Origin: Eukaryota sp. TZLM1-RC | Taxonomy: Eukaryota; Protista; Metamonada: BaSk clade | DNA length: 64,000 bases | Assembly (NCBI GenBank): GCA_040285825.1 | Contig: JAUPSS010000004.1 | Location: 3,851,658 to 3,915,657 of the forward strand | Reading direction: 5' to 3' | Position numbers and translations under genes: made by a program | The notes under the pieces: model-generated | What the model was told of the DNA's origin: nothing | What the model saw: only the letters and a program-made list of their open reading frames with translations | The model's database searches: none | Shown here: in pieces, positions 3,478 to 26,616 of the stretch | Layout of the letters: each line of letters starts with the position of its first letter | Numbering within the stretch: the stretch's first letter is position 1

Positions 3478-4177
3478 TATTGACCATGCACACTTAATTA
3501 AATTAATTCATAACTAATGGGACGAATATCATTGAACAAAGATTTCCTCTACAAAATCTTGATCTGCTTGCTGTCTAGCTAAAGCTTCTCTAAATCGATT
3601 GAAAAATCCAGGTAATCTATTATTAATGGCAAACTGAATTAGAGAACGCCATAAAAATATCAAATCTTTTCATTGTTTTTTCTTGAACCATTTTTTGGAA
3701 GCCATTTAAAAAAAATTTCTGCTTCAACTGACAATCTTCCATTCATTGAAAATGGGAAAGCAATAAAAACTTGCTGTGTATTTCTACCGGCATTAGCCTC
3801 TTCAATATCTTTATCATATTTTCTATGTTTTTCTTTTGCTTTAACACCAAGAGCACTCACAGATATTTAGATTTCTTCTGTGAACCAAAGTATCATTTGC
3901 AACATTGCATGAAATAAAATCAACAATAGCTTCAGAGTTCTCAATCCAATTACAGTATACATCACCTCTATCATCAGAGAAAATGTTTCCTTCAGCAGAC
4001 GCTCTTTGATACACGAAATTCTTGCAGTTTGTGCCATATTAAAAACAATGTCTCTAACAGCATCATGTAATGAACAACGATAAGATATCAATTTAGAACA
4101 ATTCAGAGCATGGCGCAAAGTAAGTTGAGATGGATTCCAACAAATACATTTTTCTTTTGATAATAGTTGATTAATGG
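3478..4177 (-). mobile_element. 5'-truncated non-LTR retrotransposon family A copy
   Basis: RLE ORF fragments at 3660-4205 and the conserved 3' tail (gtcccattagttatga...gtgtgc..tcaataaa) shared with other copies. Confidence 0.9.
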
Positions 4178-4539: not shown

Positions 4540-4589
4540 TATCATATTCGTTAGGGTCTATTCCAGCAACGAACTTACCTTCTAAAAAA
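4540..4589 (-). pseudogene. Fanzor1 #2 RuvC-I motif segment, separated from the rest of its gene by the MULE insertion
   Basis: The minus strand reads EGKFVAGIDPNEYD (Asp at 4556-4558). It joins LYIHDICEHELNF at 6421-6456 when the MULE is removed. Confidence 0.7.
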
Positions 4590-6411
4590 GGGACACCCTA
4601 TTCTCACTCCCTGACTTCGCATATTCTCACTCCCTGTTTCCCACTTGTTCAAACCATTTTTTCTGCTTGTATGTTGTAGCTTGAATATACTCTAGTTGAT
4701 AGCACTTTATTTGTTCAATATATCTACTGATTGTTTCAGAATTGTTGTACTAGCTGCTCCAGTTGTTCTTTGAAAGGACAACGTCTTCGTGTATGTCCAG
4801 GATTTCGACATAAACTACGTTTCCTCATGGTTCTTTGGATGACTGTGCCTACAACAGAACCATTGTTTTGTCTTTCTTCGGGGTTGCTGGTTCTAGGCCT
4901 ACCTCTTGATTGCGCAACTGTTGGAGGTAGAAGGCTCTTTTACACACACTTGAATCTCATCAAGAGTTCCTGATACAATTCTCACAACTTCCGCTGTCTT
5001 TTTGGTGATTACATGGGATACTTTTCCATGAACTCTGTCGAACAACCATGTTGCTACATTTTTAAGCGTCTTTCTTTTACTCAGTTCAACAGAACGTGAT
5101 ATTTTCTCCAACTGTTTTTCGATGAACTTAGCAATCATAATGACACTTTGTCCGAACTGACGTTGATTAATTTTGAGGTTTTCCTTCATTGCATAATGTC
5201 CTGACTCAACTCTGGACGTAGTTGTTTGGCCCAAGAAATCTCGACCGTATAAAAAACATTTGATAAATGACTCTCTTCTGGTCATCCACTCGTTCTTCAC
5301 ATATTGTAAGACAGCAGGGATATCTGGATAGATATCTGGATAGATATCTGTGAGAGAATTTTTTAAATCTTCTTCCTGATCCAACACAAATACTTCACAC
5401 TGAACAAATGCTTCGTAACTGTGATAGGATCCATGTATAATCAACAGTTGTTTCGGATTTCATGTAACAAAATCCGACATGATAAGTCATAAACATCGGC
5501 GTTGTACCCACAACGGCCAATAAAGGTAATTGATTAACTGCTGTTTTGTAAGTGCAACCAATTTGAACCACTGTATGAAATTTTTCATAGTACTTTAATG
5601 ATTTTTTATGCAAGAACAAAAAATGAGTCGCATTACTTTCTGTGTTCCACAATAAACGTACTATGAAAGTCTTTTGATGCAAATCCGCGATCAGCTTTTC
5701 TACAGATGGTTTCAATCCTAAAGCATCAGTCATAGAACCTTTTAAGTTATGAATGTCTTGTGCAACAATACAGCAATTGGAATCCTTCAGTTTTAAGCAG
5801 TCGACTATTTGGTCAGCACAGTGCTAAATTTCTGAGTTCGACAATAAAGGTAGAGCGTCTATATTGAGGGTATATGGACATGTTGTGTGACGGGTGATGA
5901 TTGTGCTTAAGCACAGAAGTCTCCAGGTCTATGTACCATTCTGGATAAAAACTCAACTTTCTTTGTCTCAGTATCAAAATAAATGAACAATTGTTGTCGT
6001 AAGAACTATGCTGACATAATGTTGCTGTGGAATGAACGTTTGCTGCACTGTGCACACAAGCAAACTTTATGTACGAACATGTACTAGTATACTTCGACCT
6101 CAAAACAGAAATTGCATAACCCTGTTTAAAGGCGGATTCCTTGAAAAGCCTATAATATGAATCGACATTTCTTAAACCATAAGGAATTTTTGGAATGACC
6201 ATCTGGTAAGGAATATAACCGCCATCGTTCACAGGATCACGTAAATCTGTCAGGGATACATGATCGCTGACAGAGCACTCAGAATCAGGTGAAGAAACAT
6301 CAAGATATAAGTCACCAGGATCATATTCATGGGGGTGAGAATTATAGTCCATGTAAAGTTTTTGGAGTGAGTGAGAATAAGCGAATTCAGGGAGTGAGAA
6401 TAAGGCGTTTC
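4590..6411 (-). mobile_element. Mutator-like element (MULE, FAR1-type), defective, with TIRs and a 9-bp TSD
   Basis: TIRs of about 45 bp (gggacaccctattctcactccctgacttcgc.. vs the reverse complement of ..gcgaattcagggagtgagaataaggcgtttc). Flanks are tctaaaaaa (4581-4589) and tttaaaaaa (6412-6420). ORFs show a FAR1 DBD (FAC..HNH), the MULE core (GCTYKT, with the first Asp replaced), GQTTTSRVESGH and a zinc-knuckle remnant CRNPGHTRRRCP. Confidence 0.92.
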
Positions 6412-6420
6412 TTTAAAAAA

Positions 6421-6500
6421 ATTCAGTTCGTGTTCACAAATATCATGAATATACAATTCATCTCTTTCTAAGTGTTTGTCTTTACATTTTTTTCAAAATT
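6421..6500 (-). pseudogene. Fanzor1 #2 segment between the non-LTR and MULE insertions
   Basis: KRDELYIHDICEHELNF resembles the Fanzor1 'ELYID' region that precedes RuvC-I. Confidence 0.6.
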
Positions 6501-6502
6501 TT

Positions 6503-9500
6503 AATTTATTGAATTTGCACACTTGATTAAATTAAATCATAACTAATGGGACGACTATCATTAAACCAAGATTTCCTCTACAAAATCTTGATTTGCTTGC
6601 TGTCTAGCTAAAGCTTCTCTAATTCGATTGAAATACCGCGGTAATCTATTAATAATGGCAAATTGAATCCGTGAACGCCATAAAAAAATATCAAATCTTT
6701 TCATTGTTTTTTCTTTCACCATTTTTTGGAAGTCATCCAAAAAAGTTTCTGCTTCAACTGATAATCTTCCATTTATCGAAAATGGGAAAGCAATAAAAAC
6801 CAGCTGTGTATTTCTATCGATATTTGCATCTTCAATTTCTTTATCATATTTTCTATGTTTTTCTTTTGCTTTAAAATCCAGAGCAGCCACAGGATTAAGT
6901 TTTCTTCTGTGAACCAAAGTATCGTTTGCAACATTACATGAGACAAAGTCAACAATAGCTTCAGAATTATCAATCCAATCACAGTATACATCACCTCTAT
7001 CATCAGAACCAAAATTATTCAGAGAAAGTGTTTCTTTCAGCAGGGGCTCTTTGATACACGATATCTTTGCAGTTTGTGCCATATTGAAAACAGTGTCTCT
7101 AACAGCATCATGTAATGAAGAACGATAAGTTATCAATTTAGAGCAATTTAGAGCATGGCGCAAAGTGAGTTGAGGTGAATTCGAACAAATACATTTTTCT
7201 TTTGATAATAATTGGTTAATGGGGATGTTCAAATATAATCTCATTTTTGTTACAAATGCTTCATTAGTAGCACACAATCCAAATCTTCGTGGTACAATGG
7301 TTACAAAAAGTGAAGAATCTGACACCTTGTTTTCACAAACACCCTTTTCCAATAACAATGAGTGAAGATCTTGATTTAAAACAGCCGAGCTGCAAATATT
7401 ATTATAAAGATCTTTTTCATACATTCCAGTCAATCTTTTCTGTAATGTTCGAAGAGTATACTTCAAATTTAAAACATTTTTTTCTGGAATATTGCCATTG
7501 AATGATTGGGGAAAACATCGACCCCATTTTTCTACATCAATTCTTGAAATTTCTTCATTTAATGCAAAAACAGTGGAACTTTTGCGTTGTCATCAATAAA
7601 TCTTCCCAATCTGCAAATCTTTCGGAGAACTCAAAGATTGCATTTCTGCATCCACCAACAAAAGCACACGAGGTAAGAATAGAAGCCTTCGTCCACCCTA
7701 AACCACCATATTGTGGACTAAGGTAAGCATGATCTGGAATTTGAAACATTTTACATCCCAGTAATTGAGACAGAACTTTTGCACGTAACTCATTAAACTT
7801 TTTGAGCCAAAGGTCTAGTGACGAGAGGATTTGTAGATCGAAATATATGATTAAAATTGGAACTAAAACACAGTCTTATAATGGTAAATTTGATGTGTTT
7901 TTTTATATCTAAATTCATCATTCGGTCAATTTTGTCAGAAATTGAGTTCAACTTTTCAAACAATTTTTTGGTAATTTCATCATTATTTCCTAAAAACGAA
8001 CCCAAATGACGAATAGCATCAATTGAATATAATTTGGCTTGAATTTCAATATCATCAATTATTGTGGAAACTGGAGAATTCGATAACAAAACACATTTAA
8101 GTAAATTAAGTCGGAGACCAATTTTGGTAAATAATTCTTTAAAACATACAGTTGCTTTTTTCACAATATTTAATTCACCAATAAGCACAACATCATCCAT
8201 ATATGCAATCATTTTTAGTGAAGGAAACATCTCTTGAATTTGCAGTAGAATAGGATGAATGGCCAAACAAAACAAAAGAGGTCCTAACGGATCTCCTTGC
8301 TTTACGCCACTTGATGAAATCAAAATGTTGTTACCAAAATGTAAATTAGAATATTTGCAATATGTTGATTGAAAATATGGTATTAATTCTGGCATATATT
8401 GCAATAGAGCACCATGGATACTGCGACGACTTAGCGAATTGAAAGCATTACTAAAATCCAATGACATGCAAACATTGGATTCATTTTGACGAAATAAGAC
8501 ATCAGTAGCAAAAATCACCCACTTCATCACTTGATGAAATCAAAATGTTGTTACCAAAATGTAAATTAGAATATTTGCAATATGTTGATTGAAAATATGG
8601 TATTAATTCTGGCATATATTGCAATAGAGCACCATGGATACTGCGACGACTTAGCGAATTGAAAGCATTACTAAAATCCAATGACATGCAAACATTGGAT
8701 TCATTTTGACGAAATAAGACATCAGTAGCAAAAATCGCTGAAGAGACTCCATCTGTAGTATTTATACCATATTGAAAGGGTAATAAAATCTTTTTAGCTT
8801 TTTCATTGAACCTGCTTAAGCAACACGCAGAAAAAATATTATGTAAGCTCTCAGAGACTGCAATAGGGCGAACATCCATTTTTGAATTTTTGACAAGTGC
8901 AGTCAAACGAGAACTTCTTAATTCTTCTGGGTATTTGCGTTGACCAGATAATATTTGGTTGAAAAATTTGGTCAATAAACCAAGGCAATCTTCTGAAGAA
9001 ATAATCGCGGCTTTTACATGATCAATAGTAATACCAGAAAGTCCGGCAGACTTACCACGAGGTCTCTTTTTGATAACCGAAAAAACTTCTGATGGCATCA
9101 ATGGATAATTTTCCCAGTATGTGCCGTAAAAATTTTGATCCATAATAGGGTCTTCATAAGGATGAAGTATTTTCAGTTTATCTACTGTATTTTCATTGTT
9201 CGGTGCTTTGACTCCGGGACTTAAAGCTGACAAAGCCTTGGACCATTTGTTGTCAAAGCATTTGTCTTCAAAAATTTTACTTAATTTCTCGGATGACTGA
9301 TTTCTCGGTGCTATATTAGTTAAATCTTCGGAAATATTAACGAAATTTTGTTCAAAAGGAGGACAAAAAGAACCAAAAAAATTCCCAAATAATATTGATA
9401 GCATACTTTCCTTTACATAATTGATCCAAAAATCTTTGAAAAACGAAAGCAAATTCATTGCATTTGGTCGGATGAATTTCTTGAGGTATTCTTATAGGAG

Positions 9501-9782
9501 GATGGTAGTTATCAACTATGCGGCATTTCAAGCAGCGATCAGAAGTTTTTCCTTTTGCATTTTTTCTAAAAGAAATACCACAAGTGTTGCAAGTTTTGTG
9601 CTTCAATCGATTGCTAACTGGTTTTGCAACAACTTGTGGAGCATTATTTATGGGTTCTACCTTAGACTCTTTCCTTCTAATAAATTTTCTTTTACATTTT
9701 GTTTCAGAATTTGCCGCATCATTTTTTCCAACATTGGGGCATGTTCGAGCATTATGTCCCTGTTGTCGACACTTTGAGCATC
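6503..9782 (-). mobile_element. Near-full-length RLE-type non-LTR retrotransposon (CRE/SLACS-like), family A, frameshifted
   Basis: N-terminal CCHC knuckle CSKCRQQGHNARTCP (about 9737-9781) and CxxC pairs. RT motifs RPIAV, LDFSNAFN, GVKQGDPLGP and YMDD. C-terminal CxC..HxxxC zinc finger with RGD/DF..KHRKY RLE, then a conserved 3' UTR. Confidence 0.95.
8308..8736. repeat. 209-bp tandem duplication inside the RT with an 11-nt filler
   Basis: 8308-8516 matches 8528-8736, with spacer acccacttcat. The duplicated peptide IFATDVLF...ILISSS is present in both ORFs. Confidence 0.95.
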
Positions 9783-11100
9783 AAATCTTTTCAAATCAAT
9801 CCTTTTGTGTTGAACTGAAACTTCAAACCCATCTGTCAGAATACTGCCATCAAAAAAGTAACCATTAGTTTTTTTGGTCATGGCACTATGCTGTATATTG
9901 AATACCCTTTGCCATGTTTTAAGATTCTTTTGGTCAACGTTAATCGTTTGATCATTACTTTCTTGAGTTTCATCAAATTTTGTGACGGGAAGCAATTGAT
10001 TCACCAGTCAGTTTTGGTGATTGATTATTAATAATTTAAATACCTCTGGTTTCAAGCCGCATATACGCTGAAGACAGTGATATTCTAATGGGAAAAAACG
10101 TTGTAAATGAATAAAGGATTAGGGTTTTTCCTTCAGCATTTTCGATTACTTCTTCAGAATTACGATTGACGTCCGTCATTAGCATGAAAGACTTTGTAAG
10201 ATATTGTTCCCAGTGTACCTGTTTATCAAAAAATATATTAAATACATGAGGCTTTCCTGTCTTTAACTTGGATTTTGGGATGGTCAAATTGAAACTCATT
10301 TGCTGGAGCATATTATTTACTGTTTTGCATTCTGTTGTAGTGTGTAATGAGTTTCATTTTTCAACTTGTGTGTTTGACTCCTCTTGTCATCCTCAGGTTT
10401 TTGAACAACATCATCCTCAACAACTTTTCGAATTTTAGGTGGATTACCTATAACAATCAGAAATTTTCAACCATGACACTTATACTGTTAAGGCCAACAG
10501 TTTGAATTCTATTTAGTTCATGTTCAAACATTCTAAAGATAGTTTTCACCATTTCGTGCTTGGCTGGTGAATTAATATTCATTTTGACTTCCCAAGCCAC
10601 ATTGATCAAGCGGCAAAAATGTTCAGAAAATGTTGTGAGAATATTAACCATATAGGACGTATGAATATTGGTGACACAATGATCCAAAATTCGAGTCACT
10701 CCCACAACACCGACATGAGTGTTGATCGAGAACAACTGAGGGTTATAATGGTTTATATAGATATTGGCCATTATAAATCTTGAAGTGTGAGCATCTTGGC
10801 GTGGTGGTTTACCCGTTACTCCCTTGTATAGGAATTTGTGAAAAACATTCACCTTTAGCCTTTCTTTGTCATCTTGTTTCAAATGACAATATTTTTTGAC
10901 CACCCAAAAAGTAAAGTGGCTTCAATAAGTTCTTTGGAAAACAAGACTGATTCCTCATGATGGAAAAAGCAATGCAAGTAATTCATAAATCCTTCATACA
11001 ATTTTGTCAATATTAACAACCATCACTTGAATCACTGTTTGCACATTTTGGTTAGGAATTAAATTTTTGATACCATATTTGAGGATTTACATTGAAATCA
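9783..11100 (-). pseudogene. Fanzor1 #2, N-terminal REC/WED region
   Basis: Motifs LKYGIKNLI, ILDHCVTNIHTSYMVNI..F, FFPIRISLSSAYMRLET and WQRVFNI..YFFDGSILTDGFEVSV occur in Fanzor1 order. Confidence 0.85.
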
Positions 11101-12060
11101 ACTTTAACAATTTTTGGTTTTGTTGTTCAAGAAATAGTTAGGAGTTTCGAAAACCAAAAGAGTATTCTGAAGACAAAGAATGGAGTAATTCTTCGTCTCT
11201 ATGGGACCAGGCATTTCCAATGACCTCCAAGAATTTGAATTTCCAGGCTGGACTGAGTTTTTTCTTAGCCCTATTCTCGCTCAATAAGTTCATGTTTACC
11301 TTGTTTTTTCAGAAAACATGAAGCAACATCAGATAAACTATTTCCAGCACCACATAGTGAAGTTGATGCTAAATTGAAGAGTATCAATAATTTTGAAATT
11401 ATATACATCTTCAATGAAAAGTTCAAAATATCAGTTAGTGGGCTAGATAAATATTCTCTTTTGAATAATTCCTTGCCATTAATGAAAGAGCGACTTTTCA
11501 AAGAGGACAAATCAAACTGTTTGATGTTATGTCCAGCCAAATAATCTGGTTGACAATTGTTCAGGGAATTATCAAAATTATGTATGATTGAAAGTTCATT
11601 GGGAAATAAATGAACAAAAAGTATCTGAGCAATGATTAGATACGGAAGAAAACACATTATAATCAGTGGAAGCCACAAATATATGTTTCTGTTTATTAAT
11701 TAATTGCGAAACCTTTGAGTCAAATTCCGCAATGACCAAAGAGATAAGTATGATAGCGTCTCTTCTAAGAGAAACGTCAGGTGGCTTTGAGAAAATCTGT
11801 GTCTTTTGATTTTCAATTTCCTTAATATGGCCTAAATTTGTTAATTTTTGTTCTAAAGAATCAATTTTAGCATCAAGTTTTTATCTTCCAGAATTATTAA
11901 TTAAATTGACAATGATTTGACTGTCTCTTTTAACAAATCTTGTTTTTGCGTTGTTTTTTTGATATTCAAAAATGAAAAATCTTAAATATTCGAATTTGTG
12001 TTTGTACTAGATATCAAGATTTGTCTCAATGTCAATCCACCATAAATTGACATTTTTGGG
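11100..12060 (-). pseudogene. PolB-type DEDDy 3'-5' exonuclease domain directly upstream of Fanzor1 #2
   Basis: ExoI WIDIET (12022-12033), DAIILIS, FPNELSIIHNF, ExoII PDYLAGHNIKQFDL, SLSDVASCFL..K and degenerate ExoIII CLQNTLLVF (about 11150-11175). Confidence 0.85.
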
Positions 12061-12372
12061 ATGAAAACTTTCTAATGATTCAAAATCAATAAGTTTTTCT
12101 GTAGCTTCATTCATATTTAGATCTACATGTGGAAAAGACTCATTAATAAAACTTGTGGGTCAGTCTCAGATGGCTCTGAGTCACACGAGATTTATTGGTC
12201 TTTGAAGCAACTGCAGACGCTCTAAAGTTGTTTTACGTTTGATAGTATAAGAAGTGGTTGATATACGTTTAAGTGACATAAACGTTTATCAATAGTGATC
12301 ATATTGAAATCATATGGAAAACTAATAAATCGATTAGTATAAAATGCGAACTTTGCGAGATTTTTTACAAAG

Positions 12373-12423
12373 GTAATTATGAAGGTTGTTACGAAGTTTA
12401 TTACGAACTTTAATACGAAGTTT
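12373..12423. repeat. Imperfect 12-bp tandem repeat (attacgaagttt-like, about 4 copies)
   Basis: aattatgaaggttgttacgaagtttattacgaactttaatacgaagttt. Confidence 0.6.
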
Positions 12424-13342
12424 GTTTGCCTGGTTTTGTGCCAGTTTATCGGTACATCTCCACCATTTACATGTGCTTGTTCCACTGCCAACACATTCAG
12501 TGAAGCATTTCGGGTGAAATTGTATTGTTTTCACTTTGTCCAAACAATTCCGTGAATTATTTCAAAAGTATATGTCTATTAGCACACATTACGAAGACAT
12601 TGCTGCAGTGAGATTTGATGGTGAAAAAGTGGGTTCTAAAAATATTTCCTCCTCGATTGTGTTTGCAATAATTGGATCGATGAATAATAATTCCATAATA
12701 AATTGTGGTCAGTAACACAAGATCTTTAAATTTCTAAAACTTTGTGATTGTCAAATTTTGGTAAATGTTTGTGGATAGAGTTTTACAGTTTTGACATGTG
12801 GAGCATTCATCAAATGCAAGCATATATTCTCAAGCAAAAAACTGAAAAATTGTTGTTACTAAAGCTTGTTCAACACTGTGAACAAGCATATGAAGGACTT
12901 TGATTCTCATGACTGATTATGAGAAAAACAGCTTTTTAGAAACAAACAATACAATGCATGTATTGGATTTTCAAAAGAACAGAATTGAATGTATGGATCA
13001 TCAACCTGTTACTTCAGCAAAGTTTTCTGTACGCTTTGAAAAGGCTGATACGTTCATGAGGCAAAATTCATAGCTGGTGAAATGCCATTGTTGCTCCAAT
13101 GGTTACAGGAACGATTTTTCGTTTTCTGTGGGTCACTTCTTTCATACATCATCACTGGTGGTTTGGGGTATTTGTCAAGTATATGCAGTAAATGGTACGC
13201 TTTACCATTTTTCTTTGTTTATTATTTCAAATACCATCATTTTATTGCAATATTAGCATAATGTATTGAATTAGTGCTTCTGAGCTACCATCAGGAATTA
13301 GTGCTTTGGTATTAATTTCTAATTGCTTTTTTGAAGATCTTT

Positions 13343-15305: not shown

Positions 15306-15353
15306 ATGGCGCATGCCAACTATGACTAGATGTTACTAGTCAGTAAAAATAAA

Positions 15354-17610
15354 CTAAGTTCTAAGATAAACAGGCCTACCTTCTTCACCGGATAACCAGT
15401 GATCAAATACATTCAACATATTCAAACAAGCCATCTTGTTCCTATTCCAATACTTTGCCTTGACTGCTTCTCTACTTTCTGACTTTTTACATCGTGCTTT
15501 TGCATCATTAATACACTGAGAACTTCTACATTCCAAAAGCCCATGAGGAAATTTGAACGGTGTTTTTTCAGCACTTTTAGGAATTGGATTCCTTGTTTTG
15601 ATAGTTGTTTCAAACACTTTTTCAAAGCAAGAAGGACACTTTGAAGAAGTATGGCTTTCATCAATTAGAACAGTTTGAAAACCTCGTCTAAGAAAACAAC
15701 TTATCCATCTATTGGAAGGAGTTGGGGGACTATGTTTGAGATTACTGATTGGTTTACGACCCAAGTCCCCAATACACAATACCATTTTGTCTTTACCACC
15801 GAATGTTGTCAATAACTTGTTCACAATTCTTTCTTCAGTGTTTTTCCTATGGATAAAACTTTGGATATTATGTATCCTCCATAAGGGTAAACTATAAAAT
15901 TGTTTCACTGCATTGTAGTGTTTACACTTGGCCAACATAAACTCTCTGAATTTGTGGTAATCAACAGTTTTTGAATCATGATCACGTAACCACGAATTCC
16001 ATTCCTCAATGGTCATTGTCTGGTCTTCACTAATACGATTATTTTGTCTAACACAAAATTGTAACACTTGTTTGTGTTTTCTATTCACCATATGTTAGCC
16101 TCATCCATTCATATTTTTTCAGTGGATTTGAATTGGATTCTTCCGACTGTGCTCCAAACTGAATTAAATCTCTCTTTCCAAGATCACCAAAAACCACATT
16201 TTTATCACTATAATCTTCAGGATCAAGGTGATCAAAATAAGAGACTGAAACCTTGGCAATATTTGAATCAGGTTTAAAGGTTAATCCTGCGAAATCTTCT
16301 CTCACAAACTGAAAACAAATACTTATACCATTGGTTACTGCGTAATTATTGAATTTGAAACCATTTTTTTGAAAGATTTGTTATTAGTGTTGAACCATCT
16401 GTTCCAATAAGAATTCTGTTGATTGTGAGTTAGACTACCAATATCAGATATATACATATAATTTTGGACTTGTTTAAATCGAGGTTTACCATCTAAATTA
16501 CCCATAGCATTTTTCCCAATACCCCACAATGTTCGCATGTCTATTGGAAAGTATCCAGGTTTACTACCCATATTAAGTGGAATGACATTAAACAATTTTG
16601 CTTCAATTCCTTCTAAATATTGAATTATTTGAAATGATGGTTTCAGAAAATGTAAAGGATACTTTTCAAGGGTGTATTGCAGTATTTTAACTTGCACATT
16701 TTCTGTTCCATTGCCCTCATTAATTTGGATAATATTTGGGAAAATTATAGACAACCAGTGCTCCAATAATAATGTAACACCTTCTTCCATCAAATAATTT
16801 GTGATTTCAAACACAACATCGGTTGTAGAATTATCAAAATATTTAATAACTTCTTGTAAAAAATATACATTAGATGGGTGATCAGAATTTCCAAAATTTT
16901 GCAAGTAATTAATTAATTCAATTCGCTTCCCACCAGTCATAAAATCCTTCACAATTTTCTAACGAAATCTAAAGAAACTGAGAAATCTTTGGCGTTGCAT
17001 ATAATTCAAATGTTGCAAACTATCTGGAAGAACTTCTGTCCAATTTTCCTTCATTAGATCTTACAAATCTTTTTTTCCCATTATATGATTAATGAACCTC
17101 TTGATATATAAATGATAATTTCTTTTGATATTCAGTTCAAAAGCAGGCCACATTTCATATTGACTCATGTATTCAAATGATCTATTTACATGGTTATAAT
17201 CTAGTCTAGGCATATGGCAAATTGATGAAGTGTCGGTGTATTCAGTGAGACAATGGCGATACCCAGGGAATTCAGAGTTGTTATCATAAGTTCCTAACCC
17301 AAAAATAAAGTTGTTCAAATCATCACTTAACGTTGGTATTGGTTTATCGAATGCTAATTTAAACCGATGCACCTTTGAAGATAATTTTTTCAAACATATC
17401 ATTGTGTGATAGAATAATTTGTAGTCAAAATTTGTTAAATCTTCGCTCTTCATGAATTTGACTAAAAGATACTGTTTGACACAAAATGAAGTTTGTTGTC
17501 TTACAGCAGTCATTATCTCAGATGCTATAAGTAACTCTTCTAGTAATTCTCTATACCTTGCTGTAGATGAAACAGAGGTCTTTACTGTAGACCATGACTG
17601 ATTTATTATT
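15354..17610 (-). pseudogene. Fanzor1 #1 (complete REC/WED plus RuvC and zinc finger), disrupted by stops and 1-nt frameshifts
   Basis: STVKTS; FELNIKRNY..IKRFIN; YTLEKYPLHFL..KLFNVIPL..GYFPID; TNG (equivalent to TDG); RuvC-I FGDLGKRDL (D at 16183-16185); IGD; RuvC-II LIDESHTSSKCPSC; HGLLEC..C; RuvC-III WNRN (D to N); terminal RPVYL. Confidence 0.93.
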
Positions 17611-18420
17611 TTATCCCTTTGGAATAGAATAAACAATTTGAAAACTAGAATTGCATCCTGAAGACAATAAGATCCTAATGTTCTCAATGGTTTATTTGAA
17701 TAGAGGCTATCAACAGGTAATAAATTTTTAAACTCATCATGAAGTTTAAGTTTTGTTTCAGCAAGTACATGGTATGCTAAATTGTTCAATGAAGCTCCAT
17801 ATCTAATTTTGATAAATTTTCTGGCAAACAAAAAAGTGTCCAAAATAGTGAAATTTTCATAAAACTGAATTACTTCTCTCCAACGTCGATGAAGATATAA
17901 TTCATTTAGACCAATTCATTGGGACAAAATTGGAAAAGTTATTCCAAAATGTGATAATCGCACAGCCAACACAGGTAAATCAAAATTAAAAATATTATGG
18001 CCTAAGAAACCAACAATTTTTTTTATCATAAGTGAATTCTGCAAATGACTTCAATAGATGTTGTTCATGATCAAATTTATTCAATGAAACATCAAAAACT
18101 GGTTTGTTATCATTGGTCCATGATAACACTCGTCTCGTTCCCTCTAAATTAGCAACATAATTTATACTCGAGGAATGGAAAATAGTATCCCCATTATGGT
18201 CAATTTCAAACAAAATCATAGAAATCATTAAAATTTCGTGCCGTTCTAAAAAACCTGTTGTTCTAACAATTGCTCATCATCAGTCATTTGGCGACGTCGC
18301 TCTGACTATGATTGCTTTTGTTGAGCTCGCAAATTGTCTAAAGTTTTATTAATATCTTTTTTCTTGGTTATTTCAACACCAATTTCCTTGGTTTCAATAT
18401 CAATTGAACAAATAAGAGGG
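17610..18420 (-). pseudogene. PolB-type DEDDy 3'-5' exonuclease domain fused to Fanzor1 #1
   Basis: ExoI SIDIET (18390-18401), HEILMIS, FDHEQHLLKSF, ExoII GHNIFNFDLP (about 17975-18003), ILDTF, SLNNLA..L and ExoIII YCLQD (17655-17669). ExoIII lies in the same ORF as the Fanzor N-terminus. Confidence 0.9.
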
Positions 18421-18956
18421 CGATCAGAGGTACTAACTTTTTGATTAAGGACAGGATCATCAATAAAAGGTTTCTTTTTAACCTTTTTCTTCTTTCCCCG
18501 AATCACATCAATTTTTTTAAATTCATTAACACTTGAAACAGAAGATTTAGGTGCAACAAGATTTTGAAAATCTCTGGGTTTCTGAGGCAGTTCAGTACTA
18601 CCTCTACTTTGGACAAACCTACGTCGACTCCTCTTTGATGAATGTTCGACCGGAATCAGAAATCTTTGACTGTTTCTTAATGATTTTGAATAACTCAATG
18701 ATTTTCTAATTTTGTTATATTTGGTCCTACGTTGTATTGGGGTCAAGGATGAATCTTTTCCAATTTGGGATAGTGTTGAAGGTTCTTGTTGCAGGCTGTC
18801 TTGCTGATTGGAAGAAATCACGGCAGAAGTGATTGGTCTCATATTTTTTACAGAAGAAACAACCTTTGTGGGAACAACAGACGATGATGACCGTCTGACA
18901 GTTTTTGAAGGAGGGGTTGATTCCACTGATGACTTTCTCATTTTGGGCTGACAATA

Positions 18957-18986
18957 TGGACCAGGGTTCGCCTCTACATCACCATG
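18957..18986 (-). other. 2A ribosomal-skipping (StopGo) peptide #2
   Basis: QLLTEHGDVEANPGP matches the D(V/I)ExNPG/P consensus. Confidence 0.9.
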
Positions 18987-19650
18987 TTCTGTGAGCAACT
19001 GTTGTTTCAATGCTGCGCGGAACTGATATACATTGACTGAAATATTGGCTGTTTCCGTCAACATCTCGTTTAAAGAAACAAAGTTGTGATGATTTTCTAT
19101 AAAGTACTGTACATATTTCAAACAAAAAATTCCGCAATCATTCACACTTTGAACTCTAGGCACAGGAAAAATTTTAACACCATCAAGGCAACTTAAAATC
19201 ACTGCAAATTTGTGCAATACAGCTGCAATATTGTGAGATACTTCTTGACCTTGAGTAACCATGGAATCTATGGCACCACAATATAAATTATAGTCTTCGT
19301 TGTTCGGTTTTTTCAAAAAAACCCATGACATCAATAACTAAAACAATCCAATGATTTCCCATTCCTCCAGATTCTATGTCCATTGATGAGACAGTCTTAC
19401 CAAAGACATCATTGATTGGAATAATGACAAAGCGACAATTGTGATTGTTACGGATGGGTGTTATAATGTAATTACGCATGGTCCGAACCATTGACTCATG
19501 GTCATCAAGGAGAGCACTCTGAACCACATTCACATTCAAAATTGAAACATGATTGGATTGGATCATCCACTTGGCTGAAAAATAATTTATTACCTCATCT
19601 TCAACAAATTCCATTGGTTCTAATGATTTAATGGAGGAAAGATCGATCGA
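18987..19650 (-). pseudogene. Ulp1/SENP (peptidase C48, SENP8-like) cysteine protease domain with one frameshift
   Basis: EFVEDEVINYF, IIPIND..GG.GNHWIVLVI, AIDS and VQSVNDCGIFCL give His, Asp, Gln and Cys. The frameshift lies in the A7/T6 runs at 19308-19321. Confidence 0.88.
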
Positions 19651-19680
19651 GGGACCTGGATTTGCTTCTACGTCACCATG
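19651..19680 (-). other. 2A ribosomal-skipping (StopGo) peptide #1
   Basis: WVPDLTTHGDVEANPGP matches the 2A consensus. Confidence 0.9.
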
Positions 19681-19739
19681 CGTTGTGAGGTCAGGAACCC
19701 AGTCTGAAGATAATTCGCAAATAGTGGAAGAACCAATAG

Positions 19740-20805
19740 TGGAAGCATCAGTAACTATCATTGGATCATTATTGCTAGAAACAACAGTTTCTAAATGAAT
19801 AGTGAAATTAGTAGCAACAAAAAATTGAGATTGGCAATCAACAACAACTACTTCATCAGAATAATAATTGAAAAATACAAAGCAGCATAAATAATAAAGA
19901 ATGGATAACAAATCGACTATACAGATACATATAGTCAAATCTTTCTTCACCGTAATCAACAACAAACAGTCAAAAACTGAATGACTAATGATTAGGCAGT
20001 CGTTTATGTATCTATAAACAAAGACTCTGCCTTCAAGATTCTTAAATTCAACATTAGTTAGTTTGAGGTCAGAATTAGTTAATTCAAAGTGACCATCGTT
20101 AGCAGTAGAATGACGAACAAGAACAGTTTCTAAATCAATAATAGAATCAGTAGTAACAATAGATTGAGATTGACAACCAACAGCATCTACATCATCAAAA
20201 TCAACAATAGACTTAACAAGGGTAATAAGAGGTTCATCATTAGCACATCCACTAATGACTTTTCCATCAGAATCAACTGGACCTAAAGTTTTGACATTGG
20301 TGAAATCCAAGGTTGAGTCATCAGCATTGATGAATGAACCTGAATAAGAAGAAAAATTGATGAGAACCAAATTAGTTAAAGTAGTTTCTGCACTAGAATT
20401 GAAATCAATTAATCTGAAAACAGATGAATCAAGTACTTTAGAATCAACCAAAGTTACTTTACTGAAGGAAGTATTCAAAAGAGCTTCAGATGGAGTATCA
20501 ATATTTAAAAGTTGTACACACAAACCTTCAACTTTAGAACCACTCTTTATATCAAAAGCTTTAACTTCAAGATTGTTTAATTGGACATCAGTTGCAGTGA
20601 AGTCACAATTGGTTAATTCAACATGTCTAGAAGCTTGTGAATGCACTACATCAACATTAATAAAGGTAACATCTGCATTGTTAATACCAACAAGAGTTTG
20701 GGATAAATGACCAGTAAGTGAGGAGTAATAATAATAATAAGTGAGGGTAGTGGGGTTGGGGTTGGGGGTAGTGGGGGTGGGGGTGCTATTTGTGTGCTCA
20801 ATCAT
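19740..20805 (-). CDS. Beta-helix-like (pectin-lyase-fold-like) Thr/Ser/Asn/Val-rich segment in frame with 2A #1
   Basis: Repeated beta-strand patterns and an internal repeat (GCQSQSIVTTDSIIDLETV / DCQSQFFVATNFTIHLETV). The ORF is continuous into the 2A and the protease. Confidence 0.45.
20745..20783 (+). other. G-quadruplex-forming G-tract cluster
   Basis: gggtagtggggttggggttgggggtagtgggggtggggg contains five tracts of at least 4 G. It is preceded by (taa)5. Confidence 0.7.
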
Positions 20806-20976
20806 GGATTGTAAATCTCCAAAATAGGCGTATTCAGTGGAATTGTGACGCTTGGGAAGGAGTCATCCATGGACATCAGTGGTATGGTAGATAATGTAAG
20901 GAACACTTCGGGCAAAAACTGCCGTGAGAAGTAGTCAAGACAAGAAGTTTCATGGAGAAAGAAAAACAGAAGCGGA

Positions 20977-23820
20977 ATGGTGTCATTAGTTGCTACAAAA
21001 TTCAACAAATTCACCACTATCCCTCATCAACTCACATCCATGACAGTAACTGTGAACTTCCAAGACATTCTCTGTAAAGCTGCCAAAAACCCCTTTGAAC
21101 CTCTCAACATCAGTCAATATGTCTCACCTTCGATCATGTTTTCGGATTCATCTCATAAAACCCCGTTTCTACCTTACGCTATCAAGGACATTCCTAAAAA
21201 CCATCTTCTCCTGATAGAGCGTGGTTTTTCAATAGTTTGGCCCGCCAAAAAGACCCCAGAAACTACTTGCTGTTCCCTCTGCTCTCTTCGCTCGGCCTTT
21301 GAATCAGAGATCTCCCTTCTCAATCATGTTCAGCGCAAAGCCTTATTCTCACGACTTTCAGCTCATGCCCTCCCCACTAACCCCTCTTCAGAAGATCTCC
21401 ATCAATTCGTCATTGAACACTGCTTTCCTCTCACTCATTCTCAGTACCATGTCCATGCTCGTTCCCGTCACTTGTTTAGGCACTCTCCTGACGAAGGGAG
21501 GGGGATCTTTATGCTTGCTTCAAATATCCCAGTCGCTTGTGTTCCTAATACCGCTTGTTTTACCATTGCTGATTGCTTATTTATCGTCACTACAACCAAA
21601 ATTAAATCTGGTTCGTTATTGTTACTTCCTGTTGATAGCAGGCCTGGTCTGGATTGCCTATCTCTTGGTACTAGTAAGTGTGGAAAGATGTCGAGTGGAG
21701 ATCAGGAAAAGCTTTATGATGTTTGTGCCAAGTGCAACTATGAAATTTCGTTATCAACAAAATCTTTATTCGAAGTTTGCTCACTCAGAGCTGGATTGTA
21801 TCAATCAATCACTGACCCAAAAATTTCATTTGATCAGACATATTCAAATTTTCAATCAGTTGCCAGTCAATTACCTCAGGGATTACCTTATTTGCAAATT
21901 GATGCCGCTCTGTGTAGATGCCTTCGATATATTGATTTAAACTTTCCAAAAGCCGTACGATCTCTTCAATTTGCTTACCAACTATCCAAAACTAACTTGG
22001 GTTTCTACAGAAGAAGAGACTTGTTCTTGAAATTGATAAGAATGGTTGCGATCGAGTATAGTAAAAAAGATTTACCTGAAATTAGTGATAAATGGACCTC
22101 TAGGCTTCTTAAATTGACAATCTTTCCCTTTAACCTCTCAGCTTTTTTTGATCTCTATCTCACCAATTATGTTGATCTTATTGAGTTACCTTCAATTTTG
22201 TCCATATTGGAAGATGAAGATTGCGATTCTTATGAAGACCCATTTGAAGACTCTGTCGCTATGAATAAACTAGCGGAATTAAACCAAAATTTAAAAAATT
22301 TAAAAACTCTGAAGGGTATTAAAAATATGACCCCTGTTCCTGAGGAAACCAAAGAAACTATCAACTGTGGATCTAATCAATCAGAATTGATTACCAATCA
22401 AATTTCTGATCCAGATAGTAAGAAATCAATCTTTTCTGATTTATGCAATAGATTTAAAATTCTTTTATTTCAACGTAGATTTGTGTCGTTGCTATCAGTT
22501 TTGGGCAGAATACCATTAGATCAATCAAATCCCGTGTTAAACTTTTTTTCTGCTATTTGTTATCAAGCTTGTGGTCAGTTTGAGACAAGTATTGAAATTT
22601 TCAACGCCTTGTCGAAAATTTCAAATGAATCTCCAATGAGCTCTACTATTAACCAAGTGATTAAAGAAGCAATGTATGGAAATTTTGATTTAGCTTCAAT
22701 ATTTGAAGAGTATTCTACTGATCCTTACTCTGGTTGCCTCCATTCAGAATATAGATCAAAATTGATCAAAGTCAACCAAAGTCCTCCAAATGGTCTGGGA
22801 ATTTCTGCTGTCGAAGACATCAAAGTTGGAGAGTTTCTATTGGTGGAAAGAGCTCTAATCACCCAGTTTCCAAACTCTGAAGATGACGTTTCCAATCAAA
22901 ATATTGATCCTTTGAGCTCTATTGCACGAAAAATTCAACATTTAGAGGATGAAATACCTGAAAATTTAAAAATTTCTCTGTTGAGTTCTCCATGTCGAGT
23001 TGGCTGGTCAAACATAGTCAAGAAGCTCAAAAAGGAAGCTCACAAAACACCATCATTAAATACCATCAAGAAGTCATTAGAATCGAACTTGTTTCCTCTC
23101 TCCCATCGGCAATTTTGTTTTCACCCCCCTCCAAAAGAAACTAGTCTTGGTGGGTTTGGGGTGTTTTTGACCGCATCACGTTTCTCGCACACGTGTGCTC
23201 CCAACGCTGTTTACTTTACTGTAGGCGACTTGATTTTCATTCGAGTAGTTAAACCAATCTCAAAGGGTGAGTCTGTTTCTATTAGAAGAATTGTTTCGGC
23301 TCCTAATGGGGAATTTTTCCCTTGCAGTTGCTGTGTTTGCAAAGCCGAAATTGAGTCAAACGATAACAAAGGTAACAGCTTTACATTATTGAAAAAAGTG
23401 ACAAAGTTACTTTTTTCCTCCCCTTTTTCTTCTTCATTCGATGCCATATTTGATAGGTTTAGGTCAACCTTAGACTCAATGCCTTCAAGATACCCCCCAC
23501 TATCAGCTGAAGCTTTTACCAGAGCTGCTCAGTTTAAGGTTTCGCAATTTGAGTTTGAGGCCGCCAGAGATTACTTGGATATTGCCTTTCAAGATTTGTT
23601 ACTACCAGAATCCAGTGGAGTTGATGTTCTTCCTTTTATAGAAGTTTGTGTCTCCCTTATAGATTACTATTTGGATTGTGGTAATATTCAAGAAATTTCT
23701 GAAATGGAACGAAGAATTAAAAAATTAGTAATTTTGATTGGAATTGATGGCAATGATGATGCCCTCTGCGGAAAATTAGTTAAACAAATGAGAATTAAGA
23801 AGCAAAGTGACGTTTGGTAG
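20977..23820 (+). CDS. SET-domain (SMYD-like) protein with a second, degenerate N-terminal SET and TPR-like helices
   Basis: GLGISAVEDIKVGEFLLVE, GVFLTASRFSHTCAPNA..KPISKGESV and post-SET FPCSCCVC. The N-terminal copy reads GIFMLAS..ACVPNT..IKSGSLL. Confidence 0.8.
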   Translation: MVSLVATKFNKFTTIPHQLTSMTVTVNFQDILCKAAKNPFEPLNISQYVSPSIMFSDSSHKTPFLPYAIKDIPKNHLLLIERGFSIVWPAKKTPETTCCSLCSLRSAFESEISLLNHVQRKALFSRLSAHALPTNPSSEDLHQFVIEHCFPLTHSQYHVHARSRHLFRHSPDEGRGIFMLASNIPVACVPNTACFTIADCLFIVTTTKIKSGSLLLLPVDSRPGLDCLSLGTSKCGKMSSGDQEKLYDVCAKCNYEISLSTKSLFEVCSLRAGLYQSITDPKISFDQTYSNFQSVASQLPQGLPYLQIDAALCRCLRYIDLNFPKAVRSLQFAYQLSKTNLGFYRRRDLFLKLIRMVAIEYSKKDLPEISDKWTSRLLKLTIFPFNLSAFFDLYLTNYVDLIELPSILSILEDEDCDSYEDPFEDSVAMNKLAELNQNLKNLKTLKGIKNMTPVPEETKETINCGSNQSELITNQISDPDSKKSIFSDLCNRFKILLFQRRFVSLLSVLGRIPLDQSNPVLNFFSAICYQACGQFETSIEIFNALSKISNESPMSSTINQVIKEAMYGNFDLASIFEEYSTDPYSGCLHSEYRSKLIKVNQSPPNGLGISAVEDIKVGEFLLVERALITQFPNSEDDVSNQNIDPLSSIARKIQHLEDEIPENLKISLLSSPCRVGWSNIVKKLKKEAHKTPSLNTIKKSLESNLFPLSHRQFCFHPPPKETSLGGFGVFLTASRFSHTCAPNAVYFTVGDLIFIRVVKPISKGESVSIRRIVSAPNGEFFPCSCCVCKAEIESNDNKGNSFTLLKKVTKLLFSSPFSSSFDAIFDRFRSTLDSMPSRYPPLSAEAFTRAAQFKVSQFEFEAARDYLDIAFQDLLLPESSGVDVLPFIEVCVSLIDYYLDCGNIQEISEMERRIKKLVILIGIDGNDDALCGKLVKQMRIKKQSDVW

Positions 23821-25108: not shown

Positions 25109-25832
25109 AAAATTTATTGAATTTGCACACTTGATTAAATTAAATCATAACTAATGGGACGACTATCATTAAACCAAGATTTCCTCTACAAAATCTTGAT
25201 TTGCTTGCTGTCTAGCTAAAGCTTCTCTAATTCAATTGAAAAACCGCGGTAATCTATTAATAATGGCAAATTGAATCCGTGAACGCCATAAAAAAATATC
25301 AAATCTTTTCATTGTTTTTTCTTTCACCATTTTTTGGAAGTCATCCAAAAAAGTTTCTGCTTCAACTGATAATCTTCCATTTATCGAAAATGGGAAAGCA
25401 ATAAAAACCAGCTGTGTATTTCTATCGACATTTGCATCTTCAATTTCTTTATCATATTTTCTATGTTTTTCTTTTGCTTTAAAATCCAGAGCAGCCACAG
25501 GATTAAGTTTTCTTCTGTGAACCAAAGTATCGTTTGCAACATTACATGAGACAAAGTCAACAATAGCTTCAGAATTTTCAATCCAATCACAGTATACATC
25601 ACCTCTATCATCAGAACCAAAATTATTCAGAGAAAGTGTTTCCTTCAGCAGGGGCTCTTTGATACACGATATCCTTGCAGTTTGTGCCATATTGAAAACA
25701 GTGTCTCTAACAGCATCATGTAATGAAGAACGATAAGTTATCAATTTAGAGCAATTTAGAGCATGGCGCAAAGTGAGTTGAGGTGAATTCGAACAAATAC
25801 ATTTTTCTTTTGATAATAATTGGTTAATGGGG
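25107..25832 (-). mobile_element. 5'-truncated non-LTR family A copy (young), with possible TSD acataa
   Basis: Nearly identical to 6503-7225. acataa occurs at 25101-25106 and 25833-25838. Confidence 0.92.
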
Positions 25833-26616
25833 ACATAACCAATCTATATATCTATATATTGTTATAGATGAATTCATTGATTAGTACCTCAAATAATTGA
25901 AGCTTACCATTATGTTACAGCATTTCTCAAGGTTGATCAATAGACCCTGTGCTCAATATCTTTAGTACTTGTAAAGTGCCTTTTTCATACAGTTAAACGT
26001 TTATAGAATTTGCGACAAACTACATCATCTTCTTCCCCAATAATTTAAAATATTCAACAAAGAATACAGTTTAAACAAAGTAATGATTGAAGTGAACGTA
26101 TGTATCGAAAAGATTGCTAATATTCTTCTGAAACACATTTTAAAATTGTCCTTATTAACCATTAACTGAGTGGTATTATTTTCAACACTGTTTTTTAAAG
26201 CATACATCCTTTCCTAATTAATTGAATTATGTCATCAATGTATTTTTTCTTTTGAATTTGTTGTACTTCTTTTGGCGAAATCAGAGGAAATATTTGGTCA
26301 GTTAGCTTCAAGTGAAAGAACTTCCAACATGGAAAGGGTTCATTCTCAATTTTTTGGCCAACTGAGTCTAAAAATTCATCAGAAATTGGAACTTTGTTTG
26401 ATTGAAATTAGATTTGAATGTGGTCTTGTAGGCAACTTTGTAAATGATTATATTACAGAAAAAGGTTTACCATTGATAAATCAGGATCTGGTACTCATGT
26501 AAGGAGGTAATTAGTACTTTTGTAAATGAAGCTACTGAGGCTTTTTGACCATAATGCAGAAGCTTCAAACAGAAAAAGAAACAAAAAAATCTTTATAAAC
26601 TGTACAATAATTACAA

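Follow-up and report, generated by a model that had tools for sequence, protein, structure and literature searches.

Two 2A motifs and the coding regions around them

The window, by which we mean the whole stretch of 64,000 nucleotides that was analysed, comes from Eukaryota sp. TZLM1-RC, which we take to be Skoliomonas litria, a soda-lake metamonad. On its minus strand the peptide HGDVEANPGP is encoded twice, by an upstream motif at 19680..19651 and a downstream motif at 18986..18957, each of them internal to an open reading frame with coding sequence on both sides. Together with their heads the two peptides read WVPDLTTHGDVEANPGP (2A-1; 19651..19701, minus strand) and KQQLLTEHGDVEANPGP (2A-2; 18957..19007, minus strand). 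Both fit the StopGo C-terminal consensus D(V/I)ExNPG/P, where the last slash marks the break, with a preceding Gly, the shared core being GDVEANPGP. The predicted break falls between Gly (19656..19654) and Pro (19653..19651) in 2A-1 and between Gly (18962..18960) and Pro (18959..18957) in 2A-2. A six-frame translation of the 64-kb window contains no other NPGP. By chance, D[VI]ExNPGP would be expected 3e-5 times per window, and it did not appear in 100 shuffles.

As the initial annotation had stated, six of the ten codons differ between the two motifs and all six changes are silent, the codon pairs being exactly those it had listed (2A-1 first: GAC/GAT, GAA/GAG, GCA/GCG, AAT/AAC, CCA/CCT and CCC/CCA). 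Counted by the Nei-Gojobori method, 2A-1 and 2A-2 differ at 6 of 7.3 silent sites (82%) and at 0 of 22.7 replacement sites (Fisher p = 1.2e-5). We make no claim of selection for silent divergence between the two, since 6 of 7.3 sites is not clearly above saturation. Their likeness reaches three codons further upstream (L-T-T/E) and no further.

Upstream of 2A-1 lies the leader (19702..20953, minus strand), which comprises a signal-peptide remnant, a body rich in repeats and, at 19932..19870, a hydrophobic segment that resembles a membrane span. Its ATG is at 20953..20951, and a 2-nt deletion at ~20936 puts the signal peptide out of frame in the window. The leader N-terminus as annotated at the paralogue L003 (protein P0005) is MKLLVLLLLLTAVFA, the L003 leader DNA itself being frameshifted. 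P0005 has a hydrophobic span at residues 411-429, followed by ~74 residues up to NPG/P. A signal peptide combined with a stop-transfer span would leave this tail and both 2A sites, and hence both breaks, on the cytosolic side, so that the protease and the nuclease encoded further downstream would escape being dragged into the ER.

The middle product is encoded between the two motifs (18960..19653, minus strand; 694 nt in the window and 693 nt, or 231 codons, in L003). With moderate confidence, we assign it on its motifs and family matches to the C48/Ulp1-like cysteine proteases, of which it would be a very divergent member. The C48 motifs GNHW (19353..), AIDSM (19268..) and QSVNDCG (19151.., 19136..) are present and supply candidate catalytic residues in the C48 order: His 19353..19351, Asp 19268..19266, Gln 19151..19149 and Cys 19136..19134 (all minus strand). 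Pfam Peptidase_C48 (PF02902) matches the Cys region only, with E = 0.0026 and 18.1 bits, below its cut-off of 20.7, and the related family YopJ matches over the Cys motif with E = 0.027. An ESM Atlas feature search gave 0.92 for the N-terminal half, where 26 of 30 matches are C48, and 0.95 for the C-terminal half, where 25 of 30 are. The HMMER profile of the protease was built from two overlapping natural pieces, which were neither joined nor read through the L003 stop; it found no relative in the PDB and, among 1.84 billion representatives, the window's own protein alone. Pattern scans for the protease in IMG/VR and the JGI metagenomes gave no match. AlphaFold2, run on the N-terminal 169 aa as a single sequence (P0002:309-477), gave a model with a pLDDT of 41, which was unusable. 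Ulp1 domains recur in Ginger1 and Mutator transposases, with a proposed role on ubiquitin-like tags in DNA repair (PMC2836005); the targets usually supposed for transposon Ulp1 domains are repair or chromatin proteins bearing SUMO- or NEDD8-type tags, and this is our best available guess here too.

Downstream of 2A-2 the third product starts (18306..18959, minus strand) with the basic head PYCQPKMRKSSVESTPPSK and runs of K/R. Within this nuclear-signal head, ESTPPSK is invariant across the subfamilies described below. The frame continues through Exo I (SIDIET, 18407..18390) and ends in the window at a stop at 18308..18306. The remainder, in pieces, occupies 15354..18305 (minus strand) and encodes the rest of a PolB-type DEDDy exonuclease, with Exo II at 18002..17979 and Exo III at 17669..17652, and a Fanzor1 whose RuvC/zinc-ribbon part lies at 15773..15429, all on the minus strand. 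In the L001 paralogue, Pfam DNA_pol_B_exo1 is matched with 30.8 bits (cut-off 23), and with the same paralogue as query phmmer retrieves from the PDB SpuFz1 (8GKH, E = 2.9e-15) and PpFz1 (9CF0, E = 9.3e-12). The TnpB-like RuvC and the zinc ribbon that mark Fanzor1 are both present, with the motifs D (IGDLGRK) and E (LIDESHTSSKCPSC) and with R-N for R-D. The initial annotation had placed the two motifs around a protease and the whole in a Fanzor context, and both proposals are supported by these matches.

RuvC-III, at 15429-15452 in the window (minus strand) and at ~13913 in L001, reads YWNRN, against YWNRD in SpuFz1 (8GKH). With Asn in place of the third catalytic Asp in the window subfamily, the nuclease may be altered or inactive. 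A Polinton-type protein-primed polymerase, a candidate raised by the DIET motif, was rejected because the exonuclease domain stands alone and is followed by Fanzor1.

Copies, lesions and subfamilies of the element

In blastn comparisons, homology to L003 and L001 begins at 20966 and stops at 15306 and the flanks are unrelated, which delimits a repeated element of ~5.7 kb (15306..20966, minus strand) consisting of leader, 2A, protease, 2A and exonuclease-Fanzor1. L001 lies on JAUPSS010000001.1 and L003 on JAUPSS010000007.1 of the same assembly (GCA_040285825.1), both in the layout of the window copy, and the three copies are 97-98.6% identical. The motif is conserved in these other copies: the two 2A blocks, of 51 nt each, show 100% identity between the window, L001 and L003. 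By tblastn, a second, divergent exonuclease-Fanzor copy (window 4540-12060) has neither 2A, leader nor protease. The leader ATG (20953..20951, minus strand) stands 23 nt from the ATG, at 20977 on the plus strand, of a divergent 947-aa SET-domain gene, so that the element has its 5' end almost touching the start codon of a host gene, in head-to-head orientation.

Measured from the Pro that follows 2A-1 up to the 2A-2 Gly, the distance in the window is 694 nt, which is not a multiple of 3, and the two motifs therefore lie in different frames as assembled, 2A-1 in the ORF 20805..19288 and 2A-2 in the ORF 19334..18306. The cause is an extra T in a T7 run at 19321..19315 (minus strand), a +1 frame shift inside the protease; the run is T6 in both L001 and L003. 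In L003 the two motifs share one frame, 231 codons apart, and P0002 of L001 is uninterrupted across the site of the T run (VIDVMGFLKKLNNEDY). The initial annotation had proposed the release of a protease of about 231 aa: the size is right for the family, whereas the window copy as assembled, being +1-shifted, cannot release such a protein.

Four single-base indels occur in the window copy alone (window 19321, 18254, 18024 and 16371), and every one of them falls in a homopolymer of 6-8 nt. The Skoliomonas litria genome is a Nanopore assembly polished with Illumina reads (PMC11316075, in whose text the label TZLM1-RC is absent). Homopolymer indels match residual Nanopore error and slippage mutation favours the same sites, so that the T7 shift may be real or an assembly error; given this pattern, frame shifts in repeats of GCA_040285825.1 are to be read with care. 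Low-depth Logan DNA contigs that match the window leave 18853-19226 uncovered. One of them (19695-20177) is exactly identical to the window; those with single-base indels carry the paralogue states (L003, L001) and hence give no evidence on the assembly at the window locus.

Besides the 2-nt deletion in the signal-peptide region, the lesions of the window copy include a 14-nt deletion at ~16086 and the stop at 18308..18306, a substitution where L003 is open. The window copy is dead whether or not the T7 shift is real. The protease is broken in all three copies compared, by the +1 shift in the window, by a 772-bp insertion of a small repeat in L001 and by a TAG in L003; the protease codon concerned (19305-19307, minus strand) is CCG in the window, TTG in L001 and TAG in L003, in copies that are otherwise ~98% identical.

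The small repeat, of ~723 bp, occurs in three places, at window 25111-25833, L001 9439-10161 and L002 17277-18000 (98.8-99% identical). Its L001 copy accounts for the insertion that disrupts the protease; the junction there carries (A/C)AAAGT as a 5-6 bp duplication. This repeat is probably a small non-autonomous mobile element.

The second subfamily of the element (L004 and L005; proteins P0007 and P0011) has an unrelated Cys-rich leader and a single 2A, F(I/T)VDLTIDGDVEANPGP, followed directly by RKRRSNFESTPPSK. This 2A is written in a third codon version (FIVDLTIDGDVEANPGP). Across the three codon versions of GDVEANPGP, eight of nine third positions vary and none of 18 first and second positions does; the heads around the 2A are only ~33% identical between the subfamilies. 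Decayed members of the L004/L005 subfamily have lost the intact motif and show NAGP, GNVE or GNVDANHGP in its place. Silent-only variation together with loss of the motif in dead copies is the pattern that a functional peptide would show, and it strengthens the suggestion of selection on the peptide that the initial annotation had drawn from the two motifs alone. Comparison among the three near-identical copies (window, L001 and L003) says little in this respect, because their differences look neutral (~7 of roughly 10 protease substitutions alter the amino acid); the comparison between lineages is the informative one.

In L002, L004 and L005 a single 2A is joined straight to the nuclear-signal head, without a protease. 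The L002 peptide (P0004) is WIPDLTEHGDVEANPGP, followed directly by YCQPKKRR, and its DNA is a hybrid: over the 18-nt head it agrees with 2A-1 at 17 positions, and over the 33-nt tail it agrees with 2A-2 at all 33. This hybrid single 2A indicates a protease cassette that is optional as a module and delimited by 2A repeats. It fits an empty site and a deletion by recombination between the 2A repeats equally well, so that gain and loss of the cassette both fit. L002 as a whole is a mosaic (9430-12924), in which a 166-bp piece with the tail of the 2A and the nuclear-signal head shares 97.6% identity with L003, a member of the double-2A subfamily, the 3.3 kb after it share 88-90% with L004 and L005, and the leader is of its own type, distantly related to the window leader near the 2A. 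This composition marks the 2A region as a junction at which modules were exchanged.

Predicted release of three proteins and alternative readings

We consider it probable that the window holds a decayed copy of a mobile element whose intact form would encode three proteins in one frame, separated by two StopGo/2A peptides and with the protease as an optional cassette. This reading draws directly on the architecture, on the conservation of the peptide through silent changes, on the 2A class and on the families of the flanking domains. Intact, the element would have one continuous frame of ~1,900 codons, carried by one mRNA. At each ...DVEANPG/P a eukaryotic ribosome would release the chain after Gly and resume translation at Pro, yielding a leader of ~500 aa with a signal peptide and a membrane span, a free C48/Ulp1-like cysteine protease of 231 aa, and a protein of ~1,200 aa that joins the nuclear-signal head, a PolB-type 3'-5' exonuclease and a Fanzor1 RNA-guided nuclease.

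Judged by its residues, 2A-1 belongs to the picornavirus class W-V-x-D-L-T-x-x-G-D-V-E-x-N-P-G-P, which skips efficiently in vitro. Its head WVPDLTTH matches active viral peptides, and 14 of its 17 residues are identical to aalivirus A1 2A4 (WVPDLTQCGDVESNPGP) and likewise 14 of 17 to Wuhan carp picornavirus (WCP) 2A3 (WVHDLTTDGDVESNPGP); the aalivirus peptide left zero uncleaved product in vitro in a GFP-2A-GUS assay (PMC11512398 Tables 1, 3). According to a deep mutational scan, G11, D12, V13, E14 and NPGP are essential and substitutions are tolerated at the x position (bioRxiv 10.64898/2026.09.24.754024), and both window 2As carry the residues that were essential there. The head of 2A-2, KQQLLTEH, is without W-V-P-D; it keeps L-T and has in addition an L-L pair as in FMDV 2A, and it has no counterpart among the tested peptides. 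Upstream context affects 2A activity (PMC11512398), which makes the activity of 2A-2 less certain than that of 2A-1.

The motifs could instead act mainly as attenuators or stallers of translation, lowering the output of protease and nuclease rather than separating the products cleanly. In a 2026 screen, most retrotransposon-linked 2A-like peptides are reported to lower protein output instead of skipping, 59-70% of those tested falling in the 'reduction' class (PMC13405545), and a dose limit on a genome-cutting nuclease would suit a transposon. We nevertheless regard attenuation as unlikely to be the main function, as the core GDVExNPGP and the W-V-x-D-L-T head match the viral peptides with zero uncleaved product (PMC11512398); attenuation and skipping are, moreover, compatible with each other.

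Lower still is the probability we give to the double 2A being a relic, that is, a recent accident in a dying lineage that never was a working three-protein gene. The dead protease of all three copies compared and the neutral look of the differences between them would suit such an accident, but neutral decay after insertion is normal for transposon copies, and the two 2A copies have diverged at 82% of their silent sites without a single replacement change. This degree of silent divergence implies that the double 2A long predates the 1.4-3% divergence of the copies and that selection has maintained it.

Clan CE proteases such as adenain process viral polyproteins, and C48 enzymes cut after the Gly-Gly of ubiquitin-like tails. 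That the motifs are cleavage sites of the element's own Ulp1-like protease, with processing proteolytic and not ribosomal, is very improbable: the protease does lie exactly between both sites, but the motif is the canonical StopGo consensus with N-P-G/P at the break, and L002, L004 and L005, which have a single 2A and no protease, keep it in the same place.

For the preferred reading, ribosomal release of three proteins, the skipping itself, the activity of the protease and its target are predictions. A more far-reaching version of it, which we put forward only tentatively, holds that active members would be the first DNA transposons known with StopGo, and that they would make leader, protease and nuclease in fixed proportion. 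At the sites cut by Fanzor, the protease would remove SUMO/NEDD8-type tags from repair or chromatin factors of the host, the 2A repeats would serve as swap joints for the protease, the leaders and the heads, and the silent divergence between the repeats would shield the cassette from deletion.

Relation to known systems

RNA viruses, retrotransposons and a few cellular genes are the known carriers of 2A peptides; in the present case the device is found in a DNA element with an RNA-guided nuclease. The 2A device and transposon-borne Ulp1 domains are each already known. Our literature search found no paper joining Fanzor with ribosome skipping or 2A-like peptides and no account of two 2As bracketing a protease in a DNA element, in line with the initial annotation, which had called the use of 2A in a Fanzor-bearing DNA element unusual. 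Recent surveys of 2A-like peptides name RNA viruses, retroelements and NLR genes and leave DNA transposons and transposases unmentioned (including PMC13405545 and bioRxiv 10.64898/2026.09.24.754024).

If the sites skip, the element would offer a small, naturally occurring collection of 2A variants in a eukaryote of deep-branching ancestry, StopGo would be added to the expression strategies of TnpB/Fanzor elements, and the arrangement would be a natural version of an engineering practice, in which a nuclease and a helper enzyme are linked by differently coded 2As. Skipping would also provide a testable link between Fanzor activity and the removal of ubiquitin-like tags. The hybrid single 2A of L002 suggests that modules of DNA elements are joined at 2A sites, a role for which these sites have already been proposed in RNA viruses.

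The closest likeness of the peptides is to the 2As of Picornavirales, with which 2A-1 shares its 17-residue pattern and in which several 2As per polyprotein partition functional modules. Our scan of IMG/VR yielded three contigs (L006, L007 and L008) with DLT[IL]DGDVEANPGP, the peptide of the third codon version. Compared with the Skoliomonas single-2A version, the last 14 residues are identical in L007 and L008 and agree at 13 of 14 positions in L006. L006 is picorna-like: its genome encodes Rhv capsid, RNA helicase and RdRP_1 domains, and its 2A (4096-4146) lies between the capsid and helicase regions. Unlike these RNA viruses, the host of the peptides here is a DNA element in the nuclear genome of a protist; the products predicted for it are a leader of membrane type, a protease like Ulp1 and an RNA-guided nuclease, and its 2A-2 has a hybrid L-L-T-E-H head.

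Among mobile elements, 2A-like peptides stand at the N-terminus of ORFs of the non-LTR retrotransposons L1Tc, Ingi, CR1, L2 and Crack (Heras 2006; Odon 2013, PMC3708506). There, as here, a 2A ahead of an enzymatic protein splits off the upstream translation. Those are retroelements with one 2A, whereas the present element has no reverse transcriptase but a Fanzor1, and two 2As around an extra enzyme.

The protease has its parallel in the Ulp1 (C48) domains of Ginger1 and Mutator/KI-MULE, which are likewise tag-protease accessories of DNA transposons, present in some members only (PMC2836005). There the domain is part of a fusion with the transposase, whereas the protein predicted here would be set free, at 231 aa, by two StopGo sites, and it is too divergent for the Pfam threshold.

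The nuclease, finally, resembles the Fanzor1 proteins SpuFz1 (8GKH) and PpFz1 (9CF0), with which its C-terminal RuvC/zinc-ribbon part aligns at the E-values given above. It differs from them in being fused to a PolB-type exonuclease and coded behind 2A peptides, and in having RN in RuvC-III, against RD in SpuFz1.
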